IMG/VR virus record: IMGVR_UViG_3300026521_000471
Location: 62,001 to 126,000 of that record
Reading direction: 5' to 3' (one strand)
Length of the DNA stretch: 64,000 nt
A program made the translations under genes and the position numbers. The notes under the pieces were generated by a model that did not search any database, was not told the origin of the DNA, and was given only the letters and a program-made list of their open reading frames with translations. Positions 35,868 through 57,660 of the stretch are shown one piece after another (position 1 is the first letter of the stretch; each line of letters starts with the position of its first letter).

Positions 35868-37421
35868 ATGGCTAAAACTAAATTAGTAAATGGTGTTAAA
35901 CTTGATTATGTTGCCGGTTCTTTTGCCAGTTTTGCCAAAATTAATAATTCTAATAAAGAACTGAAAGAAGAAAATATTAAAGATTATATAGGACTTATGA
36001 AATTTATAGAAGGTAAGCTCAAGGGTTATATAAATGTTAGCACTTTATTTAATGCTTATCAAGAAGAAGGGGATGGTCGATCTATAAAAGAACATAATAA
36101 TTTTGGTTATGATAAAGTTTATGCTGATTCTGGTGGATTACAAGTCCTTACAGCAGGTAAAACTATCAATGATGAAGTTAAAGAAAAAGTTTATACAGTC
36201 CAAGCTAAATATTCAGACTATGCTATGACATTTGATGAAATGCCTATAATGATAGCTAAAGACTTAGGTAAAAAATCAAAAATCGGCGATTATGGACAAG
36301 TCTTTGTTGATGAGTTAGTAGAGAAAAATGCGGAATTATCTGCAATGCATATTCAAAAACAAATAGATATGTTTGAATCATTAAATACATCCACTAAAAT
36401 TTTACCAATCATACATGGATATGACATTGATTCATATTTACGTTATGCTAAATCTATTTTTAATAACCTAGATCATATAGGACATCATATTCAAGGGATG
36501 TCTATTGCATCGTTAAGTGGTCATGCGGATAATAAAGTGGGGATAATGAAAGTATTTGACTTTGTGCCAAAGATATTAAATAGTGGTGAGATTAATCCTC
36601 AATATTTAGAACATATTCATTTACTAGGTGTTGCATCTTCACAAAGAATAATACCTATTATTATGATGATTAAAAAAGGATTATTACCAATTAAAACACT
36701 TTCATTTGATAGCACCGCAATAACAAAAGCATACACATTTGGTAGAGCATATCAGACCATAGAAGAATATAAAAATCCGAGGGACTTTAGTACAGAAGTA
36801 ACATTAAAAAGTTATAAAAATAAAGAGTTTCCAAACATAAAACAATTATATCAGAGTATGTATGATACGTTTAAAGATTATGAAAATTTTATGTTTGATG
36901 ATTGGGAAGATATAGCAAAACATTCACCAAATAATGGCGATAAACGGGCTTTAAAAGATCAATATTTGGAAGAAGGCTTAGAATATCAAAGAAAATACTT
37001 ACAGCAAGTAAGGATAGCTAATCTATATCATCATTATACTTATGTTTCCATGCTAGAAGGCTATATTGACGATGAACTTAGTATAACAGAATTGTTTGGT
37101 TATAATAAAACTGTTGAAACTATGATGCAATCATTTGAGAGTGTAAACACACTTGAAGAATTATCAGAAATGTGCGAATATTTTTATAATTTTGCTAAAG
37201 TCGGTCGAACAGATTTAAGAATTAAAAAAGTAAAAACGGTTAAAGAGTTTAAAGAAAAATATGAAGAAGAAGGTATTGATGTATATGCGGAATTAGGTAT
37301 CGACAAAGACGTTGAAATCCTAAGTGAAGAATTAAAAAAACCTTGGATTAAATCTTCAATAAAAAGAGCAAAAGGGGAAGATTATCCTCATGGTGAGGAA
37401 CCAACCAATGCACTTTTTTAA
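35868..37421 (+). CDS. TGT-fold guanine transglycosylase paralog 1 (DpdA-like)
   Basis: YADSGGLQ, FDEMP, HIHLLG, SFDST; ends TNALF*. Confidence 0.8.
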   Translation: MAKTKLVNGVKLDYVAGSFASFAKINNSNKELKEENIKDYIGLMKFIEGKLKGYINVSTLFNAYQEEGDGRSIKEHNNFGYDKVYADSGGLQVLTAGKTINDEVKEKVYTVQAKYSDYAMTFDEMPIMIAKDLGKKSKIGDYGQVFVDELVEKNAELSAMHIQKQIDMFESLNTSTKILPIIHGYDIDSYLRYAKSIFNNLDHIGHHIQGMSIASLSGHADNKVGIMKVFDFVPKILNSGEINPQYLEHIHLLGVASSQRIIPIIMMIKKGLLPIKTLSFDSTAITKAYTFGRAYQTIEEYKNPRDFSTEVTLKSYKNKEFPNIKQLYQSMYDTFKDYENFMFDDWEDIAKHSPNNGDKRALKDQYLEEGLEYQRKYLQQVRIANLYHHYTYVSMLEGYIDDELSITELFGYNKTVETMMQSFESVNTLEELSEMCEYFYNFAKVGRTDLRIKKVKTVKEFKEKYEEEGIDVYAELGIDKDVEILSEELKKPWIKSSIKRAKGEDYPHGEEPTNALF

Positions 37422-37785
37422 TAAAATTAAATCATTTATAAAAGGATTAGAATTAACTAAATTCGATAAAATCTTCTTTATAGGATATATTAGTTTATGG
37501 ATATATTATTTATTTAGTGGAATGAGTTATTTAACTGCTGGCGGTATATTATTAATTCTTGGAGCATGGCTAGTTTTTAAAGGTGAAATTTTTGTTGCAA
37601 CTTTAAACTATGTTATAGCCGATATAATGTGGGTTTTAAATGCTATTAATATAGGTGATAATGAAGGTACTATTTTCATTATAATTGGTATGCTTTTAGG
37701 TATTGCAGCAACTTATAAAATGCAAATTGGATCTTTAGCAAAATCATTAAAAATAGAAAAAAATTGTAAAATAAAACTAAAATAA
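37408..37785 (+). CDS. Membrane protein
   Basis: Multiple hydrophobic segments; start moved to ATG 37408. Confidence 0.6.
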   Translation: MHFFNKIKSFIKGLELTKFDKIFFIGYISLWIYYLFSGMSYLTAGGILLILGAWLVFKGEIFVATLNYVIADIMWVLNAINIGDNEGTIFIIIGMLLGIAATYKMQIGSLAKSLKIEKNCKIKLK

Positions 37786-37797
37786 AAAAGGATTAAT

Positions 37798-38562
37798 ATG
37801 ATACCTATTATGGAAATGTTTGGCCCAACTATACAAGGTGAGGGTGCAAGAAGTGGTGTAATTTCATATTTTTTAAGAGTTGGTGGGTGTAATTTTACTT
37901 GTAAAGGTTTTGGTGTGGCATATACCGATCCTGATGGCAATGAAAAGTTTGGATGTGATAGTTATTATGCCGTTGACCAAAAATTTAAGAAGTCATGGGA
38001 TTTTTTAAACTATAAAGAAATTGTTAATAAAATGAATATAATTCTGAATAAAGGGGCTCATGGTATTTTTAAACCTGATATAATTATAACCGGTGGAGAA
38101 CCACTAATGTATTGGAATAATGAAGACTTTCAAAACGTATTAATTTACTATATATCAAGAGGTTATAAAATCACGATTGAAACTAATGGTAGTATTGATA
38201 TTGATTTCACAAAAGATTATCAAAAAGAAATTATGTTTTCTATGTCGGTTAAATTAAAAAATAGTGGTGAAGCAGAACATAGAAGAATTAATATAAAAAA
38301 TCTTACTAATATACTTGAAAATTCTAAATATAGTTATTTTAAATTTGTTATTGGTAATGATATGAATGATGTAGAAAAAGAAATTATAGATATTTTAGAC
38401 AGCATTCCATATTATACTGATGTTTTTGTAATGCCTATGGGAGAAACTACCGATGGGATTGAAAAACACGCTTTAAAAACTGCTGAATTAGCTATTAAAA
38501 ATAATTGGAAATATAGCGATAGATTACATATTAGATTATGGAATGATAAACCGGGTGTTTAG
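37798..38562 (+). CDS. queE: 7-carboxy-7-deazaguanine synthase QueE (radical SAM)
   Basis: EMFGPTIQGEG, FLRVGGCNFTC...CDS, ITGGEP, IETNG, RLHIRLW. Confidence 0.92.
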   Translation: MIPIMEMFGPTIQGEGARSGVISYFLRVGGCNFTCKGFGVAYTDPDGNEKFGCDSYYAVDQKFKKSWDFLNYKEIVNKMNIILNKGAHGIFKPDIIITGGEPLMYWNNEDFQNVLIYYISRGYKITIETNGSIDIDFTKDYQKEIMFSMSVKLKNSGEAEHRRINIKNLTNILENSKYSYFKFVIGNDMNDVEKEIIDILDSIPYYTDVFVMPMGETTDGIEKHALKTAELAIKNNWKYSDRLHIRLWNDKPGV

Positions 38563-38579
38563 ATTTAAGAGGAAAATAT

Positions 38580-39929
38580 ATGAGTAAATTTAAAAATACA
38601 GAACTAATTGTCGATTATGTTCTTTCAGGATTCGGAGCTTCATTTCGATTAGGCTCACCAAATGAAGCTTACGCTAGAGGTGTTGCAGAAGAATTATTTA
38701 GTTCTACTAAATTTTTAGAATCAGAAACTAGAGGCGATAATATTGAAATGAGTGCATTGTTTAATGCATATACAGAAGATAGAATGGCGGAACAGTTAAA
38801 TGGGTTTAATCTTAATTTAAGAGATCTATATACTGGGGGTATGTATGTTGATTCTGGAGGATTACAGGTTTTAACACAAGGCAAAACTATCGATGAAGAA
38901 ATGAGAAAAAAAATATATAAAACTCAGGCTTCATATGGTGATTTTGCTATGAGTTTTGATGTTATTCCTTCTGAATTTGTAAATGGCGAAAAAATATATT
39001 TTCCGGAGCGAGTAGCTGATGCGGGAACACAAGCTGGAAAAAATTTAATTGAACAAATTAAAGCATTTAAAGAATACAATACCTCTTGTAAAATCATGCC
39101 AATCATTCAAGGATTAGGTGAAAGTGACATGGATTTATATGCTAATAATATGTTTAGCCAACTATCTAAAGATGAATTGGATTATATCACAAGTGTCGCT
39201 TTTGGTGGTGGTACAAGTGGTTTTGAATTTTTAAATAGAATGATGAATGCTCATCATTCAAAAATTTTATCACAAAAAATGAATCATGTGCATTTACTAG
39301 GGATTACAGGCTTTTCTAGACTATTACCGCCTATTATTGCAGCAATGAATGGAATTCTTCCAGATGTTAATAGAATTTCTTTTGATAGTACAACAATATC
39401 AAAGACTTATGTATTAGGGATGGTATGGCCAGAAGTTGAGGATGTTATTTCTGGTAATGTTAAAGCTGGTGCAAGTACATCGTTAGGCAAAGTAAGAAAT
39501 AAAACTGTTGAAGCTCATTATGAAAAAATGTGGAATTGGTGGAAAAAAAATCCTAATAATATTTTTGATGGTGTTGAAGATCTTTTAGAACATTCCGTAT
39601 ATAACTCTAAAGGTTTTACAACTGGATACCAACAAACAGAAAATTTATCATTAGAAGATGGAATCAAAACAATTACCCAAAAGCATGTTTTTGTATATTA
39701 TAACACATATAATTTTATCAATATTTTAAAAGGATATATAAAAGGCGAGGTACCATTATCCAACTTGTTAGGTAAGAATCAAAAAGGTATTTTCTTATTT
39801 GAACAATTAGAGAGTATTACTGATGTAAACGATTATAATGAGTGGTTTATAGATGTTAAAAAACATATAAAGATTGATGTTCCATCTGTTGGTTCAGATA
39901 AAGGACAATCAACAAATATTTTATTTTAG
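38580..39929 (+). CDS. TGT-fold transglycosylase paralog 2
   Basis: LFNAYTE, YVDSGGLQ, FDVIP, HVHLLG, SFDST; ends TNILF*. Confidence 0.8.
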   Translation: MSKFKNTELIVDYVLSGFGASFRLGSPNEAYARGVAEELFSSTKFLESETRGDNIEMSALFNAYTEDRMAEQLNGFNLNLRDLYTGGMYVDSGGLQVLTQGKTIDEEMRKKIYKTQASYGDFAMSFDVIPSEFVNGEKIYFPERVADAGTQAGKNLIEQIKAFKEYNTSCKIMPIIQGLGESDMDLYANNMFSQLSKDELDYITSVAFGGGTSGFEFLNRMMNAHHSKILSQKMNHVHLLGITGFSRLLPPIIAAMNGILPDVNRISFDSTTISKTYVLGMVWPEVEDVISGNVKAGASTSLGKVRNKTVEAHYEKMWNWWKKNPNNIFDGVEDLLEHSVYNSKGFTTGYQQTENLSLEDGIKTITQKHVFVYYNTYNFINILKGYIKGEVPLSNLLGKNQKGIFLFEQLESITDVNDYNEWFIDVKKHIKIDVPSVGSDKGQSTNILF

Positions 39930-41519
39930 GTGATATTGATGGCTACAAGTAAAAAACAAATAAATGGTATTACTTTAGATTATGTTTCTGGTTCATTACG
40001 ACCTTTCTTAAAAATAGGTTCTGGTAGTACAGATGCTATAAAGCATGAGGGAGTTGAAGATTTTAAGAAACTACTAGATTGGTCTCAAACACATTTAAAA
40101 GGTTACTTTGTACTATCAACACTTTTTAATGCGTTTCAAGAAGAAAAAGATGGTAAAGTATTAAAAGAAGAAAACAAACTTAATCATGACGCAATTTATG
40201 CCGATTCTGGTGGATTACAAGTCCTCACTAGAGGATTAGAAATTACAGATGATATTAAATTGAAAGTATATGATACTCAAGCTAAATATTGTGATTTTGC
40301 CATGACATTCGATGAAATGCCTTTAAAAGTTATAGAAAATCAAGATCAATTTGGTAAATCAATTATTGATAATAACAGGGTTGTTCATATCAAAGAAATG
40401 GTAGGTATATCTGCAAAAAATTCAGCAGCACATATTCAACAGCAAATTGATGTATTTGAAAAACTTAAGACGAATACAAAAATATTACCTATTGTACATG
40501 GTTTTAGTGAAGAAACATATATCGAATACGCCGAAACAATTATGAAAAACTTACATAATATTAAGGAACATATCCAAGGTATGGCTATTGCTTCATTATC
40601 AGCATCAGCGGATAATAAGGTAGGTATAATGAAAGTTTTTGATTATGTACCAACTCTTATGAATGCTAAAGAGATAAAAGAAGAGTATAGACAACATGTC
40701 CACTTACTAGGAGTAGCTTCATATCAAAGAATAATTCCAGTTATGATGATGGCTAAAAAGGGTATTTTTGATACCGTTAAAAGAATTTCATTTGATAGTA
40801 CTGCACTTACAAAATCATATACATTTGGGCGTGTATATGCTAGTGTTGAAGAAATGAAAAATCCTAAAGATTATGAACCTCTTTTATCATTAAATCATTG
40901 GAAAGATCCTCATTCAAAAAATATTAGACAATTTTATAATAACGTACACAATTTACTCAAAGACTACCCCGATTATATTTTTGAAGATGTTGAAGATTTG
41001 ATGAACCATTCACAAAATAATGGTGAGAAATTAAAAGTTAGTGAACAATTTAAAAAATATGGAACTGAATATGAAAGAAAATATCTGGCTCAAGTGAGAT
41101 ATAATAGCATTTATAATATGATTCAGTATTTAAGTGTTATTGAAGCTTATTTAGAAGATGAACTGGCTGTAGCTGATATATTCTCATATAATGGGACAGT
41201 AAGATTTATGTTTGAAACCTTTGAGCATAATGCACATACAAAAGAAGATTTTAAAGAGATGTGTAACTATTTTTATACAACGGCTACAACAGGAAGAACG
41301 AACCTCAATTATATAATAATGGACACTTTAGAAGAATTTGAAAAAAGTGAATATGGAAATAATCCCGATGTAAAATCGGACCCATTAGCCGAATTAGGAG
41401 TAGGGGAAGTACCAAAACATGAAAAAGGGTATGTTCGACCAGATCTTTTAGCTCGACGAGCTAAAAGAGCACCTAGAGATTTTAAAGAAGATGGAAATCC
41501 ATCAGATTCTCTTTTTTAA
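39930..41519 (+). CDS. TGT-fold transglycosylase paralog 3
   Basis: YADSGGLQ, FDEMP, HVHLLG, SFDST; closest to paralog 1; ends SDSLF*. Confidence 0.8.
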   Translation: MILMATSKKQINGITLDYVSGSLRPFLKIGSGSTDAIKHEGVEDFKKLLDWSQTHLKGYFVLSTLFNAFQEEKDGKVLKEENKLNHDAIYADSGGLQVLTRGLEITDDIKLKVYDTQAKYCDFAMTFDEMPLKVIENQDQFGKSIIDNNRVVHIKEMVGISAKNSAAHIQQQIDVFEKLKTNTKILPIVHGFSEETYIEYAETIMKNLHNIKEHIQGMAIASLSASADNKVGIMKVFDYVPTLMNAKEIKEEYRQHVHLLGVASYQRIIPVMMMAKKGIFDTVKRISFDSTALTKSYTFGRVYASVEEMKNPKDYEPLLSLNHWKDPHSKNIRQFYNNVHNLLKDYPDYIFEDVEDLMNHSQNNGEKLKVSEQFKKYGTEYERKYLAQVRYNSIYNMIQYLSVIEAYLEDELAVADIFSYNGTVRFMFETFEHNAHTKEDFKEMCNYFYTTATTGRTNLNYIIMDTLEEFEKSEYGNNPDVKSDPLAELGVGEVPKHEKGYVRPDLLARRAKRAPRDFKEDGNPSDSLF

Positions 41520-41559
41520 AAATGTAAAATTAATATAAAATATTAAAAAAAGGATATAT

Positions 41560-42594
41560 ATGAAAATAGCTATTATTGGTGCTGGATGGTATGGATGTCA
41601 TATAGCTTCAATTTTAAAATCGTACGCTGTTGATATAACTATTTTTGAACAAGAAGATGATATTTTTAAACATGCATCATCAAAAAATCAAAATAGACTT
41701 CATTTGGGTTTTCATTATCCTAGATCTTCAATAACACGACTGCAGTCAAAACAGGGTTTTAAAAATTTTAAAAAAGAGTATGATTTTTGTTGTAGTCCTA
41801 TAAGTAAAAATTTCTATGCAGTAGATAATCAACGATCTTTAATAGACTTTGAAACATTTAAAATTATTATGGAACACGATCTGGATTTTAAAATAAAAGA
41901 TAATACGGACAGACTACAAAACTTATCTGGATTAATTAATACTAAGGAAGAAGTTATTAATTTTGATATTGCCATAGAACACTTTAAAGAATTATTGTCA
42001 GGCGATTTAAGATTAAACTGTAAAATTGAAAATGCAGATATTCAAAATTGTGATGATTATGTCCAAATTAAAGATGAAAATTTTGATTATTTAATCAACT
42101 GTACTTGGGCTACTTTTAGAAATAATTTCAATATTGACGCTTTTTATGAATCATGTATTGTTTTACTTTATAAAACATCACATCACGAAAATGATTTCGC
42201 TATAACTATTATGGATGGTGAATTTGTATCTCTATTTCCATATACTGAAAACGGGGTGTACACACTCACATCTGTAAAAAATACAGTTCTAAAAAGAGAT
42301 AAAAGTTATAAAAAAATTATAGATTTTCAAAATAATTTATCGGATGATTTTATACAAGAAATTATTAAAAAAATGGAAGCTGAAATGATATATTATTATC
42401 CAGATTTTTTAATAGATTTTGAATTTAAAGACTATTTTCTTACAACAAAAAGTAAACTTAATGTACAAACTGATTCTCGTGAAGTGGTAGTAAAACATAA
42501 TAATCGAGAGATTTTTGTATTTTCTGGAAAAATAGATACTATCTTTGAAGCTGAAAAAGAAATTTTAAAAATACTAGGATTAAAAAATGAATAA
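41560..42594 (+). CDS. FAD-dependent oxidoreductase (DAO-like)
   Basis: IAIIGAGWYG, ASSKNQNRLHLGFHYPRS, SGKID. Confidence 0.85.
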   Translation: MKIAIIGAGWYGCHIASILKSYAVDITIFEQEDDIFKHASSKNQNRLHLGFHYPRSSITRLQSKQGFKNFKKEYDFCCSPISKNFYAVDNQRSLIDFETFKIIMEHDLDFKIKDNTDRLQNLSGLINTKEEVINFDIAIEHFKELLSGDLRLNCKIENADIQNCDDYVQIKDENFDYLINCTWATFRNNFNIDAFYESCIVLLYKTSHHENDFAITIMDGEFVSLFPYTENGVYTLTSVKNTVLKRDKSYKKIIDFQNNLSDDFIQEIIKKMEAEMIYYYPDFLIDFEFKDYFLTTKSKLNVQTDSREVVVKHNNREIFVFSGKIDTIFEAEKEILKILGLKNE

Positions 42595-43255
42595 TAAAAT
42601 ATGTATCATTGGCGGTACCTCCAATATTTCAAAATCATTTATAAAAATGGTTGAAAATAATTTTGATATTATAACGGTTGGTAAAAGCTCTAATAATGAT
42701 ATTGAATTTGATATTAATAATGGAAATTTTAATAATATTAATAAAATACCTTTAAATTGTTCGTATTATTTAATTGCTGCAGGCATATTATACCCAAAAA
42801 AGATTATCGAACAAACAAATAATGAGATTTTAAATAGTATATCTTTAAATCTTTTATTTCCGACTTATTTAATTGAACAGATATTAGATATTAATGAAGA
42901 TGTAAGAATTGTAGTGGTTGGTTCTGAATCGGGTAAAAAAGGTTCATATGACACAACTTACTTTTTAAGTAAAGCAGCTTTAAAATCTTATATACAAGAA
43001 AAACATATTAAATCTAAAAACCAATCACTAAATATGATTGCTCCATCGGTTATACTGGATACAAAAATGACACAAGATCGGGACGATTTAGAAGAAGTAT
43101 TAGAAAGAGCAAAAGATTTACCAAAAGAAAGATATTTAATGAGTGAAGAAGTCGCTAAACTTATTTATTATTTATTTTTTGAGGATTCAGGGTATATTAA
43201 TAACGAAGTTATTAATATGAATGGTGGTAAATTTGCAAGAATGAATTACAGATAA
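42587..43255 (+). CDS. Short-chain dehydrogenase/reductase
   Basis: IIGGTSNIS Rossmann, S and YxxxK (YFLSK). Confidence 0.8.
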   Translation: MNNKICIIGGTSNISKSFIKMVENNFDIITVGKSSNNDIEFDINNGNFNNINKIPLNCSYYLIAAGILYPKKIIEQTNNEILNSISLNLLFPTYLIEQILDINEDVRIVVVGSESGKKGSYDTTYFLSKAALKSYIQEKHIKSKNQSLNMIAPSVILDTKMTQDRDDLEEVLERAKDLPKERYLMSEEVAKLIYYLFFEDSGYINNEVINMNGGKFARMNYR

Positions 43256-43265
43256 GGAAAGGGAT

Positions 43266-44705
43266 ATGAAACAATATAAAAAACGAATAGCATTTATTAT
43301 ATCATCACAACATTTTATAATACATGGTGGTATAGGAACATTTGCACGAGCTTTCGTAGATATGTGCAATGATTTAGATTATAAAGTCGACTATATAATG
43401 GATAAAGCTCCGGCTAATAAAGATTTAGAAGAATACATACTTAAAAATAATGGAAATATTTTATACCCTCACAAAGACTTGTCTTATAAAGGTCATAATG
43501 CAAGGTTTGTTTTCTCAGATAGTATGAATTTAGAAAAAACTATAAACTTTAGGGATTCGTTTTTACAATCATTTAAGAATGCAATTTATGATGTTATCAT
43601 CATAAATTCTAATGATGCTATATTACCAATATTAATAACCGGGATTCAGAGTATTGCACCGACAATAGTATATTCTCATAGTGGTGAACTAGTTTTTGTA
43701 AATGAAAAACATGATCCAGTCTTTAAAAAGTCTGTAGTCGAAATTTATAAACAATTAATGTGTTTGGATGATATTATAATCGGAACTCATAGTGACCATA
43801 ATAAAGCTATCATAGAAAATAACTTTCCAGATATAAATGTCAAAACATTACCTTTAAGGATAGCTGATAAGGGGTTATTAGACTCCATAGATCCGAATAT
43901 TGAAAAAAATGGCGTGTTATTTGTAGGTCGTTATGAACCAAGAAAAAATCCCGACACATTTTTAAAAGGTGTTTCTGAAGCAGGACTAAAAATCTTAATA
44001 ATGACAAATGATAACGGGGCTAAAAAATTTGAAGCTAAACTTTTAGCTTTAGGTTATGAAAAATTTAATGAAAGAAAAAATGATCCACTGCAAAATGATG
44101 GAAAAGTATATGAAATAAAATTTGGTATATTTGGAAAAGAAAAAGAAGCTTTCATGAATAAAGCTAGGCTTTCTTTCCAACCTGCTATTTTAGAATCATA
44201 TGCATATAGTACAGTTGAAGCATTACATTGTTGTAGAACCGTAGTACTTGATGAATATTCGTGGGGTAAAAATTTCAAAGGGTTAGCATATTTTACAAAT
44301 AAAAAGACAATGAGTGAAGATTTAAAACGTTGGCATGATGAAGATTATGATATGGAACAGCAATTAGAAAAAATGCGAAAAATTTATAATGATGGTGCGC
44401 AGTATTGGACAGATATATTTGAAGAATATTCCGCTTTAAATTTAAACCCTAAAAAAGTAACAAAAACTAAGTTATACAAATTATTGGATGAACAGAAGGA
44501 TTTTGTATCCATTTCATATATACTTGAAACGCTACTAAATAGAGATTTAAATTGGATAGCTATTGATGATGCTGAAATTTTTTATAAAATTATTAATGAA
44601 TTGGATATTGTTCATACTGATAAAGAAACTTTTATAGCATTAAAAAATAAAAAATTCAAATTTAATATATCGGACGAAGTTGATGGTTCCGAATTATTAT
44701 TTTAA
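43266..44705 (+). CDS. GT-B glycosyltransferase
   Basis: HGGIGTF, LFVGRYEPRKN, ESYAYSTVEAL; ends SELLF*. Confidence 0.8.
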   Translation: MKQYKKRIAFIISSQHFIIHGGIGTFARAFVDMCNDLDYKVDYIMDKAPANKDLEEYILKNNGNILYPHKDLSYKGHNARFVFSDSMNLEKTINFRDSFLQSFKNAIYDVIIINSNDAILPILITGIQSIAPTIVYSHSGELVFVNEKHDPVFKKSVVEIYKQLMCLDDIIIGTHSDHNKAIIENNFPDINVKTLPLRIADKGLLDSIDPNIEKNGVLFVGRYEPRKNPDTFLKGVSEAGLKILIMTNDNGAKKFEAKLLALGYEKFNERKNDPLQNDGKVYEIKFGIFGKEKEAFMNKARLSFQPAILESYAYSTVEALHCCRTVVLDEYSWGKNFKGLAYFTNKKTMSEDLKRWHDEDYDMEQQLEKMRKIYNDGAQYWTDIFEEYSALNLNPKKVTKTKLYKLLDEQKDFVSISYILETLLNRDLNWIAIDDAEIFYKIINELDIVHTDKETFIALKNKKFKFNISDEVDGSELLF

Positions 44706-44743
44706 AATGATATTTGTATAATACATATAAAAAGGTTAAAAAA

Positions 44744-45493
44744 ATGAAAATATACCAAATCGAAATAACAAATGCATGTCAATTTAGATGTGATTACTGC
44801 CCTAGAACAACAGCTATGACTAGAAAAGTAGGCTCTATGTCTAATGAAACGATTAACAGAATAGCTGATGTACTAACTAGTGATTCAATTCGACTTCACC
44901 ACTATGGCGAAAGTTTAATTGAGTTGGATAAAACTCTTTATGCGATTAAAGCATTAAAAAATAAAAACCCAGAATTGGTTATAGAATTAAATACAAATGG
45001 TGAGTACTTAACCCCAGAAACGACAGATAAACTATTTGAGGCCGGCCTTTCAAAAGTTAATTTATCATATCATTTCCCACCAAGTATTAAACACTTAAAA
45101 AATATTGATCCAAAATATAGAGAACGAATTGAAGTTATGAAAATAGCCCACTTATCTGAAATTGAAAAGTATAAAAATGAGTTAAAAGAAGTAAAAGAAA
45201 TAGGATACAAAGTAATCTTAAAACAATTAAGAGACTTAGGTCAAGTTAATGCAGATAGTGCAGGAAAAGGTAATGCATGGAAAGAATGTTCTTTTATAAA
45301 AAATAATGAATTCGTAGTATTATGGGATGGACGTATTGTCACTTGTTGCGAAGTATTTGATGGTGAACCAGAAGAAATACTAGGATCAATTTTTGATGAC
45401 TCTTTACCAGAAAAAAATAAATATATTTCTAAATGTGCTACTTGTATGGGTTATGGAAATGGCGATATTGAAACTGAAAAAATAAATATTTAA
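44744..45493 (+). CDS. Radical SAM protein with SPASM/Twitch-like C-terminus
   Basis: EITNACQFRCDYC, HHYGES, C..WDG..VTCC...C..C; start moved to ATG 44744. Confidence 0.85.
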   Translation: MKIYQIEITNACQFRCDYCPRTTAMTRKVGSMSNETINRIADVLTSDSIRLHHYGESLIELDKTLYAIKALKNKNPELVIELNTNGEYLTPETTDKLFEAGLSKVNLSYHFPPSIKHLKNIDPKYRERIEVMKIAHLSEIEKYKNELKEVKEIGYKVILKQLRDLGQVNADSAGKGNAWKECSFIKNNEFVVLWDGRIVTCCEVFDGEPEEILGSIFDDSLPEKNKYISKCATCMGYGNGDIETEKINI

Positions 45494-45554
45494 GGGTCTA
45501 TTAAGGTATTACTACTTATAATATTTAATACCATTATAAGGAGGTTCATACCAT

Positions 45555-48035
45555 ATGAACGCAGATTTAGAAAAAACACATAGTACCTTACCAGCACACC
45601 CTGTTGGGCAGGCTATAACTACGAAAACCAAAGTAATAGAATTTGCTGAAAAAATCGTAAATTCTCAACTAGGAGAAATTACTGGCGCATTCATAGATAC
45701 CGATACAATGCACCTTTGTTTAAAATATTCAAGTAGTAAAACTGCTCTCACAGCAAAAATGAATAATAAAAAAGAAGATATTTTAACCCCTATTTTCTTA
45801 AAAGCAAAAGGTAAAAATATTCAAGATTATACCTTTAATGTAATTCTAAACTCATCCGATAGTTCAACAAAAATACGTACAGATGCAGCATTAATTGAAC
45901 ATGGAATATTATATGCTATTGAATCAAAATTTTCTGAATCCATTTCAGAAAAAAAGATTATTGATCTATTGAATGAACTTCGTAATAAACACTTGAAAAG
46001 TTTTTATACAGCTTTAAAAGATGACAAACTATATCTTAATTTAGTAAAACAAAATTACATGCCTGTAACAGATATTATAATGACTGGCAAAATAATAGAA
46101 AACCCAATATTACTTGAAGCTTATGCTGATGAAGCATATATAAGTGAGATGGATATTCTGGATATTATAGAAAAATTTGGTCACTATATGCGCTCATACA
46201 AAATGAAACTCAAAGAGGGTGTTAATATCAATGATGATATATTTGATGATAAATCAAAAATGGTAAAGCCACAATTTGTAGAATTTGAATATATATCAGA
46301 CCACCTATATAATTTATTTGATGTAGAAATTGCTGCTAGAATCGATACATCTTCTACCGAACCAATAAGTGCTATTACTCATATGAAATTAGAAAAAGCA
46401 TTTGAAATGATTGGACAAAATGGTAATGTTGAAGATGGTCTAGGTAATAATAGAGCGAAGAAAAAGTGGAATGATCCGGCTAGAATTGGTTTATTTTATG
46501 ATCAACTAAACACTTATATAAATGAAATGGAATCAGGGTCATTTAATCATCATGCCCGTCACGATGCGTACGTAACAGCGACAAAACAACGTACTCTACT
46601 CTATAGACATTTTGAAGAACATATAACTAAAGATTTTGAGATAGATAAAGTTAGTGGTAAGTTGAAAGAAGTAAAAGTTAAATCAATTACTCCTTCAAAC
46701 ACTAAACTTATAATTAGTTCAGGGAATATAACTGTTGCTAATTCGCAGCATTTAGTTGAAAATAGATTACTCATAAAACAGTTGGCTTATTATTTTATCG
46801 AAACATCAATATATGGCAAATTTCATTATAATCCATGGGAACGTGATGAATTAATTAAAGAAGTTTATGATTGCAATAAAGGTTTGATTGATAAAGTTTT
46901 AGATAGATTTAAAGAACATTTTTTATCAAAAAAATTCAAAGATACTGATAAATCAAAAATAAAAGAGATGATTGAAAGATGGGGCGATGATAGAATCCCT
47001 GTAAGATTTGTAACTGAAGAGGGTGATATAATCAACCAATTTATAACTTCATCAAATACAGGTTTATCGGCTACAAAAAACCAAGAAATACTAGCTCCAT
47101 ATAAAACAGAGCAAAATACTATTAGAAGTATTATAGCCGATTATCAGATTGATAATAAAAATATTTCATTAGCATTAACACATAGTGATATTAGAAAAAT
47201 TTCTGCTAAGTTAAATTATAATGAAAATATAATAACATTAGTTAATCTTATATCTGATAATCCTCTGTATTGGGATGATGAACAGAAAAAAACAAAAATC
47301 GATTCTATGAACACAGTTGATTGTACTTATACAGTATCACTCACTAAAAAAATGGCTAAATCCTTTGCCCAATTATTTATTAAGGGTGATGATAAACTTC
47401 AAGATAACTTGTTAAAGTATGAAAAACTTATAGAGACAGAATTGGCTAAAGACGACTACGATGAATTGATACTAAAATCATTTGAAAATAGCGTCGCCGA
47501 TTTAAAAAGCCAATTAGAAGGACATTACAGTCATCATAGACTATTCCATTTGAAAAAATATGCCCACCTACAATTAGAAGCTATTATTAAGGTCATTAAT
47601 GTTTTTGAAAAAGTATATAAAATGGACCAATATAATGAACGTATGAGAGATTTGACAATTGCAAGCAACGATAATACTGTGTTAGTTTCAGAACACGACT
47701 ATACTAAAGGTCGCTTGGTCGGTTTATTCTTTAATGCTTTAAAAATATTAAAAACTAAAAAAGCCAATTATTGGCATGATGAAGATGAAATGATTCGATA
47801 TTTTAAATTGTTTATAGAAACCCTAGAAGATGTCCGATTATTATATAGAAATATTAATGGCGACATTGTAACGGTAACAAAATTATTCAAAGAGACCATA
47901 TATCCTAAGAATATAGATACCAACAATAGTAATATTGTATTATCTACCTTTAAAGTATCAGTAACCGATCTTACAGATAATATTATAAAAGTGTTTAAAT
48001 CGAAAATAATAAATACTAATCAAAATAATGTATAA
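45555..48035 (+). CDS. Large hypothetical protein (826 aa)
   Basis: Long ORF with its own promoter; no motif I can assign firmly. Confidence 0.75.
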   Translation: MNADLEKTHSTLPAHPVGQAITTKTKVIEFAEKIVNSQLGEITGAFIDTDTMHLCLKYSSSKTALTAKMNNKKEDILTPIFLKAKGKNIQDYTFNVILNSSDSSTKIRTDAALIEHGILYAIESKFSESISEKKIIDLLNELRNKHLKSFYTALKDDKLYLNLVKQNYMPVTDIIMTGKIIENPILLEAYADEAYISEMDILDIIEKFGHYMRSYKMKLKEGVNINDDIFDDKSKMVKPQFVEFEYISDHLYNLFDVEIAARIDTSSTEPISAITHMKLEKAFEMIGQNGNVEDGLGNNRAKKKWNDPARIGLFYDQLNTYINEMESGSFNHHARHDAYVTATKQRTLLYRHFEEHITKDFEIDKVSGKLKEVKVKSITPSNTKLIISSGNITVANSQHLVENRLLIKQLAYYFIETSIYGKFHYNPWERDELIKEVYDCNKGLIDKVLDRFKEHFLSKKFKDTDKSKIKEMIERWGDDRIPVRFVTEEGDIINQFITSSNTGLSATKNQEILAPYKTEQNTIRSIIADYQIDNKNISLALTHSDIRKISAKLNYNENIITLVNLISDNPLYWDDEQKKTKIDSMNTVDCTYTVSLTKKMAKSFAQLFIKGDDKLQDNLLKYEKLIETELAKDDYDELILKSFENSVADLKSQLEGHYSHHRLFHLKKYAHLQLEAIIKVINVFEKVYKMDQYNERMRDLTIASNDNTVLVSEHDYTKGRLVGLFFNALKILKTKKANYWHDEDEMIRYFKLFIETLEDVRLLYRNINGDIVTVTKLFKETIYPKNIDTNNSNIVLSTFKVSVTDLTDNIIKVFKSKIINTNQNNV

Positions 48036-48059
48036 TTATTAATAAAAAGGATAACTGAT

Positions 48060-48413
48060 ATGGCTGTTAAGCAATTAAATAATTTTGTATGGATTACAAC
48101 GAGTTTTGAGGGGTTTCATAAATACCCCGATGCTCCTGAAGAGGTTTCATTTTTAAAAGAAAGACACAGACATATATTCAAACTTAAAATTTGGATTGAA
48201 GTATTTCATAATGATAGAGACATTGAATTTATTCTTTTTAAAAGATTTATTGATTCATTAATAGTTGAAAATGAAATGGATTATAAATCATGTGAAATGA
48301 TTTCTGATGATCTCGCAAATTGGATTAATGAAAAATTTCCAAAGCGGACTATAAAAATTGAAGTTTCTGAAGATGGAGAAAATGGCTCTTATAAAGAATA
48401 TGAAGCTATATAG
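48060..48413 (+). CDS. QueD-like T-fold protein
   Basis: FEGFH.YP.AP, HRHIF, DRDIEF, SCEM, SEDGENG phage QueD-paralog pattern. Confidence 0.75.
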   Translation: MAVKQLNNFVWITTSFEGFHKYPDAPEEVSFLKERHRHIFKLKIWIEVFHNDRDIEFILFKRFIDSLIVENEMDYKSCEMISDDLANWINEKFPKRTIKIEVSEDGENGSYKEYEAI

Positions 48414-48421
48414 GTTTAGAC

Positions 48422-49510
48422 ATGAAAAATATTTTTTTAGTTGATATTGAATATATACCAACCCGTTATTCTTCACAATGGAAAGAATGGATTCCAGAAG
48501 AAATTAATAAATCCGAGTTATTAAATTGTGTTGTAATAGATGGTCCGGATAACAAAGATTATGAAACAACCCCTGGTGGGTTTTTCAATTTCTTTGAAAC
48601 TAATTTATATAAAATGGTGCAAGGGCAAAAAATAGCAAAACTCTTTATGGAAGATAAAGTCAATGATGGTGATATATTCTTATTTACTGATGGTTGGCAT
48701 CCTGCAGTAATATCTTTAAGACAAATGATAAATCTCTCTAAGAAAAAAATTAAAATGATGGGTATGTTTCATGCTGGGGCTTATGACCCAGCAGATATAT
48801 TGGGACAAACTTGCAGAGATAATTTTTTAAATATTGAATTAGGTTACTTAGATTGCTTAGATACGGCTATATTTGCTACTAAATTTAGTAAACAACTTAT
48901 GCTTGACAATCTTATTATTGATGATGTGAAAAAAAATGAATTAGATAAAAAAATGGTAGTGACAGGTTTCCCATATAATTTTGATCATTTATATCAAAGT
49001 AAAAATAAATCTAACAATATTTTATTTCCTCACAGAATAAGTCCAGAAAAACATATTGAACTTTTTAGAAAAAAAGATAAAATATCAGAACAATACAACA
49101 CTATTGAGGAATTACTTCCCAATTTTGAAGCAATTGTTACTTTAGAAATAACAAAAAATAAAGATGAGTTTCATGAATTATTAGCTAACTCAAAATATAG
49201 TGTTAGTTTCGCAGATCAAGAAACTTGGGGCATTTCAGTATTTGAATCATTAATGAGTGGATGCTTGCCAATTATACCAAATAAATTAAGTTATAATGAA
49301 ATGTATTCAGATGAACTTAAATATGATCCATATGATGAAAATGGTAATGAAGATATATATAACTGGCCTATAAAAGTTAAAAAAGTTATTGACCGTTTAG
49401 AACAATTAACACTAGAAGATAAACAAAAAATAATAGATAAAAATATAAAATATTTAAAAGAATATTATTGTACTTTTGAGTATATTTTAGATTTACTAAT
49501 TATAGGATAG
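48422..49510 (+). CDS. Glycosyltransferase (commonly paired with the QueD-like gene in phages)
   Basis: TRYSSQW, DGWHP, HAGAYDP, FPHRISPEK, QETWGIS..E. Confidence 0.8.
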   Translation: MKNIFLVDIEYIPTRYSSQWKEWIPEEINKSELLNCVVIDGPDNKDYETTPGGFFNFFETNLYKMVQGQKIAKLFMEDKVNDGDIFLFTDGWHPAVISLRQMINLSKKKIKMMGMFHAGAYDPADILGQTCRDNFLNIELGYLDCLDTAIFATKFSKQLMLDNLIIDDVKKNELDKKMVVTGFPYNFDHLYQSKNKSNNILFPHRISPEKHIELFRKKDKISEQYNTIEELLPNFEAIVTLEITKNKDEFHELLANSKYSVSFADQETWGISVFESLMSGCLPIIPNKLSYNEMYSDELKYDPYDENGNEDIYNWPIKVKKVIDRLEQLTLEDKQKIIDKNIKYLKEYYCTFEYILDLLIIG

Positions 49511-49803
49511 AGTCCATCTAATTTCAAAGTTAAATTCAAGACTATTATCGAATACAGGATATGAATTTAACTTAATTTTTATTAAATTCCTTTTGCAACG
49601 TCTATTTAGATTTAACTCCATTAAATCTAATTTTTAATAGCTTTATAATTCACCCCCCACTTATTTTCTTATAAATATTTTTTAATATTTCTACTATTTT
49701 ATCATAATATCATTTATCATATTAAAATAGGATTTTGACTTTTTTTGTATAATATTATCTATACAAATTCACTCAATAAAAGAGTTACCAAGGATAAAAA
49801 ATT

Positions 49804-51350
49804 ATGACACAAAATAATATTTCAAATATTAAATCTACTATCGAGAATGATCCAAAAGGATTGAAATTAGAGCTTGTAATTTCGGGCATACCTTAGGCTA
49901 CTTTAAATTAAGAAGTCAGCACGATGATTTATTTAGAATTACAGCATTATCTTTACGAAAATGCCTAGACTATATTGAAGAAAAATTACCAGGCAATGTT
50001 TTATTACAGGGTCTATTCAATGCATACACAGAGGAAGTCATGGCTCGTAGAGCAAGTGAAGAATCAATTAATGTACCGTTCAAATCTATCTTCCCACATG
50101 GATTGCATGCTGATTCAGGTGGTTTACAAATGGTTACTTTAGGTAAGGGTACTGTTGAAAAAGAAGATAGACTTAAAATCTATGAAACACAAAGTAAGTA
50201 TGCTGATTATGCTATGAGCTTTGATGAAATTCCTGCAGTATTTATTGATGATGTTAAATACTATATGCAAAGTCTAATTGAAGAAAAAGGTATTGAGTCA
50301 GGTAATAATCTCAGGGAACAATTTGATTATTTTGCTACAACCGATTCAACTTGTAGAATTGTACCCATCGTACAAGGTTGGGGGATAAAAGACACAAATA
50401 CATTCGCTAAAGGATTATTTGCACAATTTACTGATGAAGAAAAAAGCAAAATGGATATTTTTGCTTCGGGTTTCCAAAGTACATCTGTTTATGCATCGGC
50501 GAAAAGGGCATTCGACTTATACAGAGTTGAGTCAATACCTGAAAATGCTAAACAACATCTGCACCTTTTAGGGGTAACAGGTTTTAAAAGGTTAATACCT
50601 ATTTTGATACTAATCAAAAATAATATGACTGAGGGTTTAAAATCTCTATCATTTGATTCGGTTACACTTTCTATGAGTTATGTTATGGGTGGCACTGTTC
50701 CTTCTGTTGATGATTTTAAAAATGGTAAGGGCAAAATAAAATTAGGTAAAAAACGTAATAAAGATGTGGATGCTTATTGGCAAGAAATTTTTGATTTTTG
50801 GAAAGACGATCCAGAATTCCCTTTTGATGATTTAAATGATATGATGGAACATAGCTATTATAATTCAAATGGATTAACTAGTGGTTACCAACAATATGAG
50901 CATTTTTTACAAGCTGATGAAGATGGCAATTTTACTAAAAAAAATAAAAAAATAGCTGATTTTCATTTTGCTAAAGTATTGAAGCAAGAGCAGTATTATA
51001 TTTTATATCAAGTTCATAATTATGTACAAATATTAGAATCCTTTTTAGAAGATGATATTAAACTTGAGCATATTTTTAAAGGTAAAGATCTAGTATTATT
51101 CCAAGCTTTAGAAAAAGTTACAACTGATGATGATTTTAATGATTGGTATGAATACCTTAAAAAATCTACAGGTTTTTCAATTTTAACTATGAATTCTGAA
51201 GCAAAATCATCAGAGGAAACAACTAATTTATTATTTGATGACTCAAATAACGAACCTATAAAAGAAAGAAAAAAACAACCATCTAGAGTAGCTAAAAAAC
51301 CGACTAAAGTAGAAGAAGATAATATTGATGCTATGAATGATTTATTTTAA
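49804..51350 (+). CDS. TGT-fold transglycosylase paralog 4, with a -1 frameshift near 49885-49893
   Basis: 49804-49896 encodes LELVISG and the 50040 frame extends upstream through LFNAYTEE, both conserved in the paralogs; HADSGGLQ, FDEIP, HLHLLG, SFDS; ends MNDLF*. Confidence 0.75.
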
Positions 51351-54805: not shown

Positions 54806-54860
54806 AAAAAATAATTTTATTTTAAGTTCTTCTTTGGTATAATCTTTAGAAGGATTTAAA

Positions 54861-56591: not shown

Positions 56592-56600
56592 GAGATAACA

Positions 56601-57095: not shown

Positions 57096-57135
57096 TTGTA
57101 ATAAATAATTCTAGAATATAAACTAGGATTATTAA

Positions 57136-57513: not shown

Positions 57514-57660
57514 TGTTAATTTTAGATATTATGACATATACAATCTTATTTATACCCATAGTATATTTGATAATTACTAAGGGTACAGATCATTCATTTA
57601 TGGATAAGATTATAAACCTCCGACGTTAAAATTGTAAAATACCTTAAAAAGGTATAAATT

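Follow-up and report, generated by a model that had tools for sequence, protein, structure and literature searches.

A putative 7-deazaguanine DNA-modification island with six diverged DpdA2-like paralogs in an uncultivated giant phage from hydrothermal vents

The window analyzed here is a stretch of 64,000 nucleotides (positions 62,001 to 126,000 of IMG/VR record IMGVR_UViG_3300026521_000471), belonging to a 224-kb contig of an uncultivated jumbo phage from hydrothermal vents. Unless stated otherwise, positions are those of the window. The following genes were found at the locus or near it:
28756-29358 (+), QueD (6-carboxytetrahydropterin synthase family), 200 aa
35868-37421 (+), DpdA2-like paralog P1, 517 aa, clade A
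37390-37785 (+), 131-aa hydrophobic protein conserved beside QueE
37798-38562 (+), QueE (7-carboxy-7-deazaguanine synthase, radical SAM)
38580-39929 (+), DpdA2-like paralog P2, 449 aa, clade B
39930-41519 (+), DpdA2-like paralog P3, 529 aa, clade A, with a GTG start abutting the P2 stop (gap of 0 nt)
41560-42594 (+), FAD/NAD(P)-binding oxidoreductase (DAO family), specific to this genome
42587-43255 (+), short-chain dehydrogenase/reductase (SDR; FabG / glucose-ribitol-dehydrogenase-like), specific to this genome
43266-44705 (+), glycosyltransferase GT1a, 479 aa, with a C-terminal ...ELLF tail
44714-45493 (+), small BtrN-like radical SAM enzyme (rSAM) with a SPASM/twitch-like C-terminus
45555-48035 (+), 826-aa ORFan, specific to this genome
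48060-48413 (+), DpdL homologue (QueD paralog; proposed CDG decarboxylase)
48422-49510 (+), predicted GT4-fold glycosyltransferase GT1b
49804-51350 (+), DpdA2-like paralog P4, clade B, split by a 2-nt frameshift (ATG at 49804, in-frame TAG at 49894-49896, main ORF 50040-51350)
63185-64000 (+), MazG-like pyrophosphatase, 315 aa, running past the window end
The window also encodes 22 tRNAs, including Tyr-GTA, Asn-GTT, Asp-GTC (two copies) and His-GTG.

An earlier note, made from the sequence alone, had described four paralogs with the DSGGLQ and (S)FDS motifs of TGT/DpdA, interleaved with tailoring genes. This observation is real and was even understated. The four ORFs exist on the + strand, each carries DSGGLQ and SFDS (at residues 87 and 279 in P1), and a six-frame scan found the motif nowhere else in the window. 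They are true paralogs, as all four hit phrog_10773 at E 1e-39 to 1e-61 (1e-51 for P1, 4e-61 for P3) and are 26-48% identical to one another. However, the genome has six paralogs and not four. P5 and P6 lie just outside the window, at genome positions 126668-127999 and 128012-129322, immediately downstream of the MazG-like gene. The latter was identified by phrog_1247 (E 2.5e-39) and an Atlas score of 0.97, and its homologue in the related locus L103 sits between the rSAM and GT1b genes. All six paralogs keep the three active-site Asp motifs. The interleaved genes are also as described in the note, except that its QueD-like protein is a DpdL homologue, and the 131-aa ORF is a small hydrophobic protein and not QueD-like. 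The note reported FolE and QueC missing from the window; FolE, FolE2 and QueC are in fact absent from the whole contig, which CheckV rates 85% complete. FolE is present in 70 of 74 related loci. As the contig is only 85% complete, this pathway census could change.

The paralogs did not match Pfam TGT or any entry in PDB sequence searches, and thus their link to TGT rests on fold and motifs. Their N-terminal ~300 aa are about 31% identical (E 2e-26; 30.6% for P3 by tblastn) to VPFG_00171 (YP_008125322) of Vibrio phage nt-1, named DpdA2 in PMC6884629. The DpdA2 enzymes of phages nt-1 and VH7D insert preQ0, preQ1 and CDG into DNA in E. coli (PMC10516641). The paralogs align over their full length with both, and DSGGLQ, FD, HxLG and SxDS are invariant. 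An AF2 model of P2 (pLDDT 91.8) gave only TGTs, at probability 1.0, as top Foldseek hits, and comparison with Z. mobilis TGT gave a VIA Z of 19.9 over 307 residues. The family is DpdA2 and not DpdA3, the Campylobacter-phage type.

One DpdA per phage, as the note stated, is indeed the rule: all 71 isolate genomes with a hit have it at a single place, and all 74 other IMG/VR loci have one copy within +/-10 kb. The ten paralogs of this phage and a 306-kb relative form one clade (support 96/88), which contains the cross-phage pairs P2/G001 and P4/G001 (G001 being a sister phage), and the same orthogroups occur in the related loci L101 and L103. Orthologues of P1 were found in G001 (57%) and L101 (53%), of P2 in G001, L101 and L103, and of P3 in L101 (77%) and L103 (68%). 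Each orthogroup keeps its own version of a loop that aligns with the TGT specificity loop, distinct between orthogroups and conserved within each one; P1, for example, carries the clade A loop IASLSGHADNKVG and IHG. This equivalence is inferred from motif order and the known features of Z. mobilis TGT, and not from a residue-level structural alignment. Ancient duplications and orthogroup-specific loops support functional divergence of the paralogs.

In P4, the N-terminal 30 codons lie in another frame: the G001 orthologue reads ...SGVPGYFKL where this genome reads ...SGIP-TAG and then resumes GYFKL. Contigs from two other studies have the same sequence, whereas the orthologues are intact. Thus, not all copies need be functional. 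This frameshift, found in three samples, is one argument for the possibility that the copies are redundant duplicates, kept for dosage or drifting towards loss, and that the sugar and redox genes are unrelated cargo, for example for host surface glycans. In the same direction, FAD, SDR, GT1a and the 826-aa ORFan are absent from the closest relatives, and PHROGs class such GTs and FabG-like genes as auxiliary metabolic genes. We consider this reading unlikely. The duplications predate the split of at least four phages, and the orthologues stay 48-78% identical with all motifs intact, which is not what drift produces. Also, GT1b, DpdL and rSAM are conserved inside the island in relatives, GT1b tracks DpdL across 35 unrelated loci, and GT1a shares the DpdA2 tail and has its only homologue inside another DpdA2 module.

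Regarding base synthesis, QueD matched Pfam PTPS at 69 bits, while TIGR03367 QueD was its best NCBIfam hit but below the cut-off; the HGH motif is present, but the Cys lies one residue out of register with CxxxHGH. QueE matched phrog_2076 'QueE-like' at E 5e-56, and its five best NCBIfam hits are all QueE models, below their equivalog cut-offs. QueE is present in 65 of the 74 DpdA2 loci. The 131-aa protein had no family hit, but homologues lie next to QueE in G001, L101, L103 and a further locus, L050. The DpdL homologue is 38.5% identical to CGPG_00067 of phage phiST, named DpdL in PMC10516641, carries the signature LxxxHRHxF as LKERHRHIF, and matched phrog_17812 at E 8e-27. DpdL is present in 47 of the 74 loci and QueC in 16, with no overlap. 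Its decarboxylase role is only a published proposal that failed heterologous testing, as DpdL plus DpdA of phage ACP17 alone gave no dDG in E. coli.

The AF2 model of GT1b (pLDDT 90.3) hit BshA, MshA and glycogen synthase in Foldseek (E 1e-11, TM 0.6-0.67), and E-x7-E (E267, E275), R205 and K210 are conserved in the family. It was found in 35 of the 74 loci, all of them DpdL-positive, and a homologue is adjacent to DpdA2 in phages ACP17, X1 and PA5oct. GT1a matched Pfam Glycos_transf_1 at 27.6 bits, above the cut-off of 26.4; its one homologue (35% identity) lies between DpdA2 and DpdL in locus L044. The rSAM enzyme matched Pfam Radical_SAM at 54.8 bits and SPASM at 20.6 bits, just under the cut-off, and its best PDB sequence match is BtrN (E 1.3e-6). 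Orthologues at 62-67% lie inside the islands of L101 and L103, making it core to this lineage. The FAD oxidoreductase matched Pfam DAO (31.8 bits) and NAD_binding_8, without any PDB sequence match or homologue in related loci. The SDR matched Pfam adh_short_C2, phrog_3142, and FabG and acetoacetyl-CoA reductase in the PDB (E 1e-9). The 826-aa ORFan had no Pfam, PHROG or NCBIfam hit, no relative in IMG/VR, only its own cluster among 1.84 billion representatives, and Atlas scores below 0.9. As FAD, SDR and the 826-aa gene are absent from the closest relatives, their link to the modification is unproven.

The C-terminal tails gave additional information. Of 302 ORFs, 8 end in LF (1.4 expected), six being the paralogs and one GT1a. 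The L044 homologue of GT1a ends in ...SLEGLFE, and most DpdA2 proteins end in SLExLF-type tails, whereas GT1b and DpdL do not. These tails resemble the clamp-binding peptide of the T4 polymerase gp43, which ends in ...SLDFLFG, although no clamp or clamp loader was found on the contig.

Our data indicate that the phage encodes QueD and QueE, enough to make 7-carboxy-7-deazaguanine (CDG) from host-supplied dihydroneopterin triphosphate, together with DpdL, which the literature proposes converts CDG to 7-deazaguanine, a GT4-fold glycosyltransferase, a BtrN-like rSAM enzyme, and six TGT-fold paralogs of the DpdA2 family. This much we regard as established by the analysis; what follows, including all activities, substrates and DNA chemistry, is inferred from sequence and predicted structure. 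We hypothesize, with moderate confidence, that each paralog is a DNA guanine transglycosylase which exchanges G for the phage-made deazapurine after replication, and that the paralogs, born from ancient duplications in this lineage, have been kept because they divide the work. G001 keeps the same orthogroups although it would make a different base through QueC and ArcS-like genes, which argues against each paralog being tied to one product of the DpdL/GT pathway. We therefore favor different DNA contexts (motif or structure) as the main axis of specialization, which would result in a much higher density of substitution than one low-efficiency DpdA2 could achieve. In this view, the cassette between the paralogs sets the chemistry. 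Here, DpdL plus GT4 plus rSAM, whose DpdL-GT4 core recurs beside single DpdA2 genes in many phages, most likely yields a sugar-bearing or otherwise extended deazaguanine and not plain dDG, even though a plain 7-deazaguanine has no obvious handle for a sugar. The tails on the DpdA2 proteins and GT1a, lacking in DpdL, GT1b and rSAM, suggest that the first set works on DNA tethered to a common hub, possibly the sliding clamp, and the second set on the free base or a precursor. Taken together, this suggests a denser and probably sugar-decorated version of a known anti-restriction DNA modification.

The interpretation in the earlier note is thus only partly supported. TGT-fold, DpdA-type enzymes with intact motifs in a genuine deazaguanine island are confirmed, and its idea of a glycosylated or otherwise new deazaguanine gains real support from the recurrent association of the GT4-fold enzyme with DpdA2 and DpdL in many unrelated phages. 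The reading it put first, that the paralogs differ mainly in the base inserted (for example CDG, DG or a glycosylated base) and that the genome carries several G replacements, remains possible but is less favored. The variable segment lies where TGT reads the 7-substituent, and clade A has His where clade B has Gln in the I-x-Q/H-G motif. The same difference separates nt-1 DpdA2 (H; inserts preQ0 and not preQ1) from VH7D DpdA2 (Q; prefers preQ1), and DpdA2 enzymes are reported to be promiscuous. However, this correlation rests on only two tested enzymes, and G001 keeps orthologues of P1, P2, P3 (tentatively assigned) and P4, including their loops, with QueC, a GATase-like protein and two DUF5591 proteins, and lacks DpdL and the GT.

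It is also conceivable, although unlikely, that clade A and clade B members pair into hetero-oligomers. TGT enzymes are dimers, and the eukaryotic enzyme, QTRT1/QTRT2, is a heterodimer of paralogs; PDB 7owz and 7b2i were among our fold hits. A clade B gene directly abuts a clade A gene in all four phages (P2-P3 here, in L101 and in L103; P2-P1 and a tentative P3-P4 in G001). Nevertheless, all six paralogs keep every catalytic motif, unlike a non-catalytic partner subunit, and P5 and P6 are both clade B and adjacent to each other. One complex prediction gave no answer and counts neither way.

A role on phage or host GUN tRNAs, also raised in the note, appears doubtful, and nothing found here supports tRNA as a substrate. 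The window does encode GUN tRNAs, a complete AspRS lies just upstream of the island, as in L103, and the fold is that of tRNA-guanine transglycosylase. However, the nearest tested relatives act on DNA, no conserved Cys/His zinc-site pattern appears among the invariant columns, Pfam TGT is not matched, every paralog carries the polymerase-like tail, and no Q-specific genes (QueA/G/H type) were seen among the annotated island genes.

The closest systems are the DpdA2 systems of the Vibrio phages nt-1 and VH7D (Straboviridae), which share the protein family over its full length (about 22-31% identity), the invariant DSGGLQ, FDE, HxLG and SxDS motifs, and the location among queuosine-precursor genes. 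Those phages have one copy, plus FolE, QueC and QueF or ArcS, and very low substitution (about 0.1% of G), whereas this phage has six diverged copies, no FolE or QueC, and DpdL, GT4 and rSAM instead, its paralogs forming a clade separate from all other sampled DpdA2. In Acidovorax phage ACP17, Xanthomonas phage X1 and Pseudomonas jumbo phage PA5oct, homologues of DpdA2, the GT4-fold enzyme, DpdL and QueE lie side by side near the replication genes, also without QueC. They have a single transglycosylase, no BtrN-like rSAM, and usually FolE. PA5oct DNA resists restriction as if G is modified in GA/GG motifs, by an unidentified chemistry (PMC12191111), and the GT is not discussed in the DpdL paper, where 'glycosyl' does not occur. 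The Cellulophaga phage phiST dDG system has QueD, QueE, DpdL and a MazG-like gene, no QueC, and full replacement of G by 7-deazaguanine, but a single transglycosylase, DpdA3, with no detectable profile similarity to our family, and no GT. The Campylobacter phage CP220-type dADG genomes belong to low-GC phages in which the pathway stops at CDG and substitution is complete; they use DpdA3, not DpdA2, and no DNA or protein match to any Campylobacter phage was found. The analogy to Campylobacter phages made in the note is by composition only. Finally, in the T4 glucosyl-hydroxymethylcytosine system the modified base is a pyrimidine made at the nucleotide level, but it shares with the proposed pathway the post-replicative transfer of a sugar to a modified base in DNA by GT-B-fold enzymes, and the C-terminal peptide of gp43 resembles the tails of the DpdA2 proteins and GT1a.

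The sequence under study consists of bases 62001-126000 of a single IMG/VR viral contig of 224,467 bp, which is linear and rated 85% complete by CheckV. Its GC content is about 28%, almost all genes are on one strand, and the window holds 22 tRNA genes. Near-identical sequences were found in hydrothermal-vent, epibiont and biofilm metagenomes from at least five studies, whereas no isolate phage matched at the DNA level, as a megablast search of the island against 50,697 phage records returned nothing. The features to which we refer by window coordinates are the following.

25128-26732, an unannotated 534-aa protein
26771-27532, an Endonuclease I family nuclease (83 bits), a little upstream of QueD, which might degrade unmodified host DNA
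28756-29358, QueD
32364-34214, an aspartyl-tRNA synthetase (AspRS), just upstream of the island
35868-37421, DpdA2-like paralog P1
37390-37785, a 131-aa hydrophobic protein that overlaps the end of P1 and precedes QueE
38580-39929, DpdA2-like paralog P2
39930-41519, DpdA2-like paralog P3
43266-44705, glycosyltransferase GT1a
44714-45493, a radical SAM enzyme
48060-48413, a 117-aa DpdL homologue, followed by glycosyltransferase GT1b
49652, a poly-C run in the 293-nt spacer upstream of P4
49804-50040, the N-terminal region of DpdA2-like paralog P4 containing a frameshift, with a TAG at 49894-49896; main P4 ORF at 50040-51350
52641-54005, a nicotinate phosphoribosyltransferase-like protein
54056-61351 (genome 116056-123351), a GGDEF diguanylate cyclase, an RlaP-family nucleotidyltransferase and a GroEL-type chaperonin, downstream of the island
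63185-64000 (running on to genome 126132), a MazG-like pyrophosphatase directly upstream of paralogs P5 and P6

The observation made in the earlier note, that four paralogs carrying the motifs DSGGLQ and SFDS lie among deazaguanine and tailoring genes, was correct and proved richer than described. All four ORFs exist and carry both motifs, and a six-frame scan found the motif nowhere else in the window. They are homologous to each other (26-48% identity), and all four matched one PHROG of unknown function at E 1e-39 to 1e-61. However, a search of the whole contig showed six paralogs, as P5 and P6 lie side by side 650 bp beyond the right edge of the window. The interleaved QueE, FAD oxidoreductase, SDR, two glycosyltransferases and radical SAM/SPASM enzyme, as well as the upstream QueD, were all confirmed by family models, although the SPASM match of the radical SAM enzyme was below its cut-off. 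For QueE, the best matches were phrog_2076 (E 5e-56) and five NCBIfam models that are all QueE, each below its equivalog cut-off, and Pfam recognized Radical_SAM and Fer4_12. In QueD, the Cys lies one residue out of register with the CxxxHGH signature (CKKSIHGH) and the protein has a C-terminal extension of about 80 aa, so that it may or may not be a standard QueD. Intergenic gaps from P1 to GT1b run from -32 to 61 nt, which looks operon-like. The absence of FolE and QueC from the window, pointed out in the note, extends to the whole contig, where FolE, FolE2, QueC and the ArcS core domain were all absent. The one weak QueC-like signal, at genome 174110, is an NAD synthase (genome 173966-174919, L010:3966-4919 in the fetched segment), which forms with the nicotinate phosphoribosyltransferase-like protein an NAD salvage pair; a second radical SAM protein lies just upstream of it (L010:3065-3961).

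None of the paralogs reached the Pfam TGT model (PF01702), nor did any other part of the contig. Pfam and NCBIfam scans, a phmmer search and a profile search of PDB sequences with 50 sequences all failed to reach TGT, and only fold comparison did. Nevertheless, tblastn placed their first ~300 residues at about 31% identity (E 1e-23 to 5e-32) on single genes of 71 isolate phages. In Vibrio phage nt-1, the matched gene is VPFG_00171 (YP_008125322; E 2e-26 and 30.6% identity), lying between FolE and QueC, and in VH7D it is CF80_gp012, lying between FolE and QueF. YP_008125322 is named as the founder of the DpdA2 subfamily (PMC6884629), and the DpdA2 of VH7D and nt-1 were shown to put preQ1, preQ0 and CDG into DNA in E. 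coli (PMC10516641). The six paralogs align with both proteins over the full length, with DSGGLQ, FD, HxLG and SxDS invariant, and the same columns are invariant in a 50-member family alignment.

A model of P2, built on 46 relatives in an alignment without any rows from GenBank records, had a pLDDT of 91.8. Its top solved-structure matches were all tRNA-guanine transglycosylases (Foldseek probability 1.0 to TGT and QTRT1; VIA Z 19.9 over 307 residues, rmsd 4.4). In Z. mobilis TGT, DSGG holds Asp102, FDE holds Asp156, and FDS corresponds to the nucleophile Asp280, and by this equivalence the catalytic and base-binding Asp are retained in all six paralogs. No Cys appeared among the invariant or near-invariant columns of 46-50 family members, and the zinc-binding CxCxxC...H subdomain of canonical TGT was therefore not found. 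Also, the family showed no detectable similarity to DpdA3, the type of phiST and Campylobacter phages (hhalign probability of 1.6% to phiST CGPG_00065). We therefore assign the paralogs to DpdA2 in the broad sense, and not to canonical TGT or DpdA3. A complex prediction for P2 with P3 gave a score of 0.00 without controls, which is no evidence either way.

Each of the 71 isolate genomes with a match has exactly one place. Among 80 IMG/VR loci fetched with +/-10 kb flanks, only one other contig, of 306 kb and hereafter G001, has more than one copy, with four copies clustered at its end. Homologues of the radical SAM enzyme led to two further fragments of related phages with the same array, L101/L102 and L103. 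In a maximum-likelihood tree, the ten paralogs of this phage and G001 form one clade (support 96/88), with a single-copy contig (L050) as sister; together with L050 they form the sister group of all other sampled DpdA2, under a midpoint root and with no outgroup. Inside the clade, P2 and P4 each pair with a G001 gene (100/99), P1 and P3 group with two G001 genes, and P5 and P6 branch within clade B. BLAST assigned the L101 and L103 genes to the same orthogroups at 53-78% identity. Thus, the duplications predate the divergence of at least four phages, and the copies have been kept.

Conservation in these relatives extends to neighboring genes. The 131-aa hydrophobic protein, which has no family match, is conserved beside QueE in G001, L050, L101 and L103, and could be a small membrane component, for example for precursor uptake. 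The AspRS is a complete bacterial-type enzyme (anticodon-binding OB fold, class II core, GAD insert) conserved at the same place in L103, but it is 40-43% identical to many bacterial phyla and gave no host signal. RlaP and GroEL are syntenic in L101. The homologue of the MazG-like pyrophosphatase sits between the radical SAM enzyme and GT1b in L103, and phiST has a MazG-like gene next to DpdL; this protein may trim the dGTP or modified-nucleotide pool.

Paralog P4 differs from the others by a lesion in its N-terminal part. Upstream of the ATG at 50040, the N-terminal block of the family continues in frame with no start codon, and a separate ATG at 49804 opens 30 codons of family-like N-terminus that end at the TAG at 49894-49896. 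The intact G001 orthologue reads ...SGVPGYFKL, where our sequence reads ...SGIP, then TA, then GYFKL, which amounts to two extra bases. Contigs from two other studies cover this point with no indel, the only length polymorphism nearby being the poly-C run at 49652, which varies between samples (one base more in X4, one base less in X3). The lesion is therefore real in the population, whereas the orthologues in G001, L101 and L103 are intact. It could reflect a recent pseudogene, an N-terminally truncated product starting at 50040, or recoding, although we could not see a slippery site that would fit programmed recoding. Metatranscriptome contigs match parts of DpdL, GT1b and P4, but DNA carry-over cannot be excluded.

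In order to examine whether the paralogs have diverged in function, 22 sequences were aligned by orthogroup. The catalytic segments are constant, whereas the segment between the I-x-Q-G strand and the HxLG strand differs sharply between orthogroups and is conserved within each one across three or four phages. By motif order, this is where TGT carries its GGLAVG substrate-specificity loop. The P1/P3 clade has a 10-residue insertion (IASLS..ADNKVG) and His in place of Gln in I-x-Q-G, P2 has VAFGGGTSG and, in three of four phages, FDV in place of FDE with the Asp kept, and P4 has ASGFQSTS-like sequences. This is the pattern expected of specialized enzymes under purifying selection. Which property differs could not be resolved from these data. 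Specialization for DNA context is suggested by G001, which keeps the same orthogroups and loops with a different chemistry cassette, and by the motif specificity of individual DpdAs (GA for phage iggy, two motifs for CAjan). Specialization for the inserted base is suggested by the Q/H switch, which also separates the DpdA2 of VH7D (Q, prefers preQ1) from that of nt-1 (H, preQ0 only), though these are only two data points. We favor DNA context, with base choice as the main alternative. The interpretation of the note, which proposed enzymes differing in base, sequence context or substrate together with a glycosylated or otherwise new deazaguanine, is partly supported.

The DpdL homologue is 38.5% identical (E 7e-13) to phiST CGPG_00067, which is named DpdL in PMC10516641, a QueD paralog proposed to decarboxylate CDG to 7-deazaguanine. 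DpdL is recognized by LxxxHRHxF replacing CxxxHGH and occurs in phages with QueD and QueE but no QueC; our protein has LKERHRHIF, and the contig has no QueC. The decarboxylation itself has not been demonstrated in the literature. The next gene, GT1b, gave a model with a pLDDT of 90.3, predicted to adopt a GT-B fold, that matches GT4 retaining glycosyltransferases (BshA, MshA, glycogen synthase; E 1e-11; TM 0.6-0.67). Across 25 family members, the E-x7-E motif is kept as E267 (at least 90% conserved) and E275 (invariant), together with invariant R205 and K210, the basic residues expected to bind the diphosphate in GT4 enzymes. However, GT1b scored only 22.6 bits against the 26.4-bit cut-off of Pfam Glycos_transf_1, which GT1a passed at 27.6 bits.

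These two genes are not peculiar to this phage. Among 74 single-copy DpdA2 loci, 47 have DpdL and 16 have QueC, and none has both (Fisher p about 2e-9, with the caveat that the loci are not independent). The GT is present in 35 loci, all of them DpdL-positive. Among isolates, Acidovorax phage ACP17 has DpdA2-GT-DpdL-QueE in that order, Xanthomonas phage X1 has GT-DpdA2-DpdL-QueE, and PA5oct has a 540-aa gene followed by GT and DpdL with QueE nearby. It was reported that ACP17 DpdL plus DpdA gave no dDG in E. coli and suggested that other enzymes may be needed, with no mention of a glycosyltransferase (PMC10516641). PA5oct DNA resists several restriction enzymes in a pattern that points to a modified G in GA/GG, of unidentified chemistry (PMC12191111). 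The DpdA2-DpdL-GT4 module gives a concrete candidate for the 'missing enzyme' that prevented reconstitution of the DpdL pathway, and for the G modification of PA5oct. We found no report of a glycosylated deazaguanine in DNA, nor of multiple DpdA genes in one phage.

The radical SAM enzyme has orthologues inside the islands of L101 and L103, found through a protein index, whereas a pattern scan of IMG/VR returned no relatives. It scored 54.8 bits for Radical_SAM and 20.6 bits for SPASM, under the 21.5 cut-off of the latter. Its best solved relative is BtrN, a small radical SAM dehydrogenase of an aminocyclitol (E 1.3e-6, but only over the N-terminal 110 residues), which fits sugar tailoring but does not prove it. 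By contrast, the FAD oxidoreductase, SDR, GT1a and an 826-aa ORFan are missing from L101, L103 and G001 and are thus inserts specific to this genome. GT1a has one homologue, lying between DpdA2 and DpdL in another locus (L044), while the FAD oxidoreductase, SDR and ORFan have none; for the ORFan, Atlas features, a scan of IMG/VR and an exhaustive HMMER search all gave nothing. G001 fills the same interval with QueC (185 bits), a weak GATase hit, two DUF5591 proteins (the ArcS core domain, named ArcS2 in PMC10516641) and other genes, and lacks DpdL and the GT on its 306 kb. The G001 cassette also holds an 880-aa protein with a weak GmrSD_N match (L013:16066-18708, in the fetched G001 segment) and a pyrimidine-dimer DNA glycosylase (L013:19167-19646), and L101 also has a Pyr_excise gene next to QueE. 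The paralog array is therefore a stable frame and the chemistry cassette is exchangeable.

Every paralog ends in ...x-L-F after a charged linker that the model leaves disordered. Only 8 of 302 ORFs of this genome end in LF, where 1.4 would be expected: the six paralogs, GT1a (...DGSELLF) and the unannotated 534-aa protein at 25128-26732, the shared tail being of the acidic-x-L-F type. The L044 homologue of GT1a ends in ...SLEGLFE, and most DpdA2 family members end in SLExLF-type tails (X1 ...SLEELFG, ACP17 ...TLDELFE), whereas GT1b and DpdL have no such tail. T4 DNA polymerase (gp43) ends in ...KASLDFLFG, a peptide that tethers it to the gp45 clamp and that the shared tail resembles. We hypothesize that the tail docks the enzymes that work on DNA to a common hub, possibly a sliding clamp, while the untailed enzymes act on the free base. 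No gp45-type clamp or gp44 clamp loader could be recognized on the contig with Pfam PF09116, PF02916 and PF21328, or by BLAST and phmmer with the T4 proteins. Such a tail suggests how post-replicative modification could be coupled to the replication fork. In the most far-reaching view, which our data do not exclude but which we consider unlikely, six specialized guanine-exchange enzymes and a DNA glycosyltransferase would be tethered to the replisome through this tail and would together write a sugar-bearing 7-deazaguanine into essentially every sequence context. This would be the first glycosylated purine in a natural DNA genome, and the same chemistry would also exist, unrecognized, in cultured phages such as ACP17, X1 and PA5oct.

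Our analysis establishes the gene content, the family and fold assignments (the latter from predicted models), the copy number, the phylogeny, the co-occurrence statistics, the tail and the frameshift, while the exchange of G in DNA for preQ0, preQ1 or CDG by DpdA2 and the proposed conversion of CDG to DG by DpdL come from the literature. The remaining steps, including base exchange by the paralogs themselves, are inferred. In this view, host FolE would supply the pterin precursor, QueD and QueE would make CDG, DpdL, GT1b and the radical SAM enzyme would process the base or a precursor, and the DpdA2 paralogs would insert it after replication at different DNA contexts. GT1a may add a further sugar on DNA, and the FAD oxidoreductase, SDR and ORFan are of uncertain relevance.

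Phage 7-deazaguanine DNA is a current topic in restriction and CRISPR evasion, yet DpdA2 enzymes are known only as single, inefficient genes. A conserved array of four to six diverged DpdA2 paralogs with a swappable chemistry cassette offers a natural experiment on how base-exchange enzymes choose DNA sites and on how substitution density is raised. The island belongs among the DpdA-based deazaguanine DNA systems already described in phages, but differs from them in three respects, which are a conserved multi-paralog transglycosylase array, an exchangeable chemistry cassette, and a widespread, unstudied DpdL-GT4 partnership that predicts a new G derivative.
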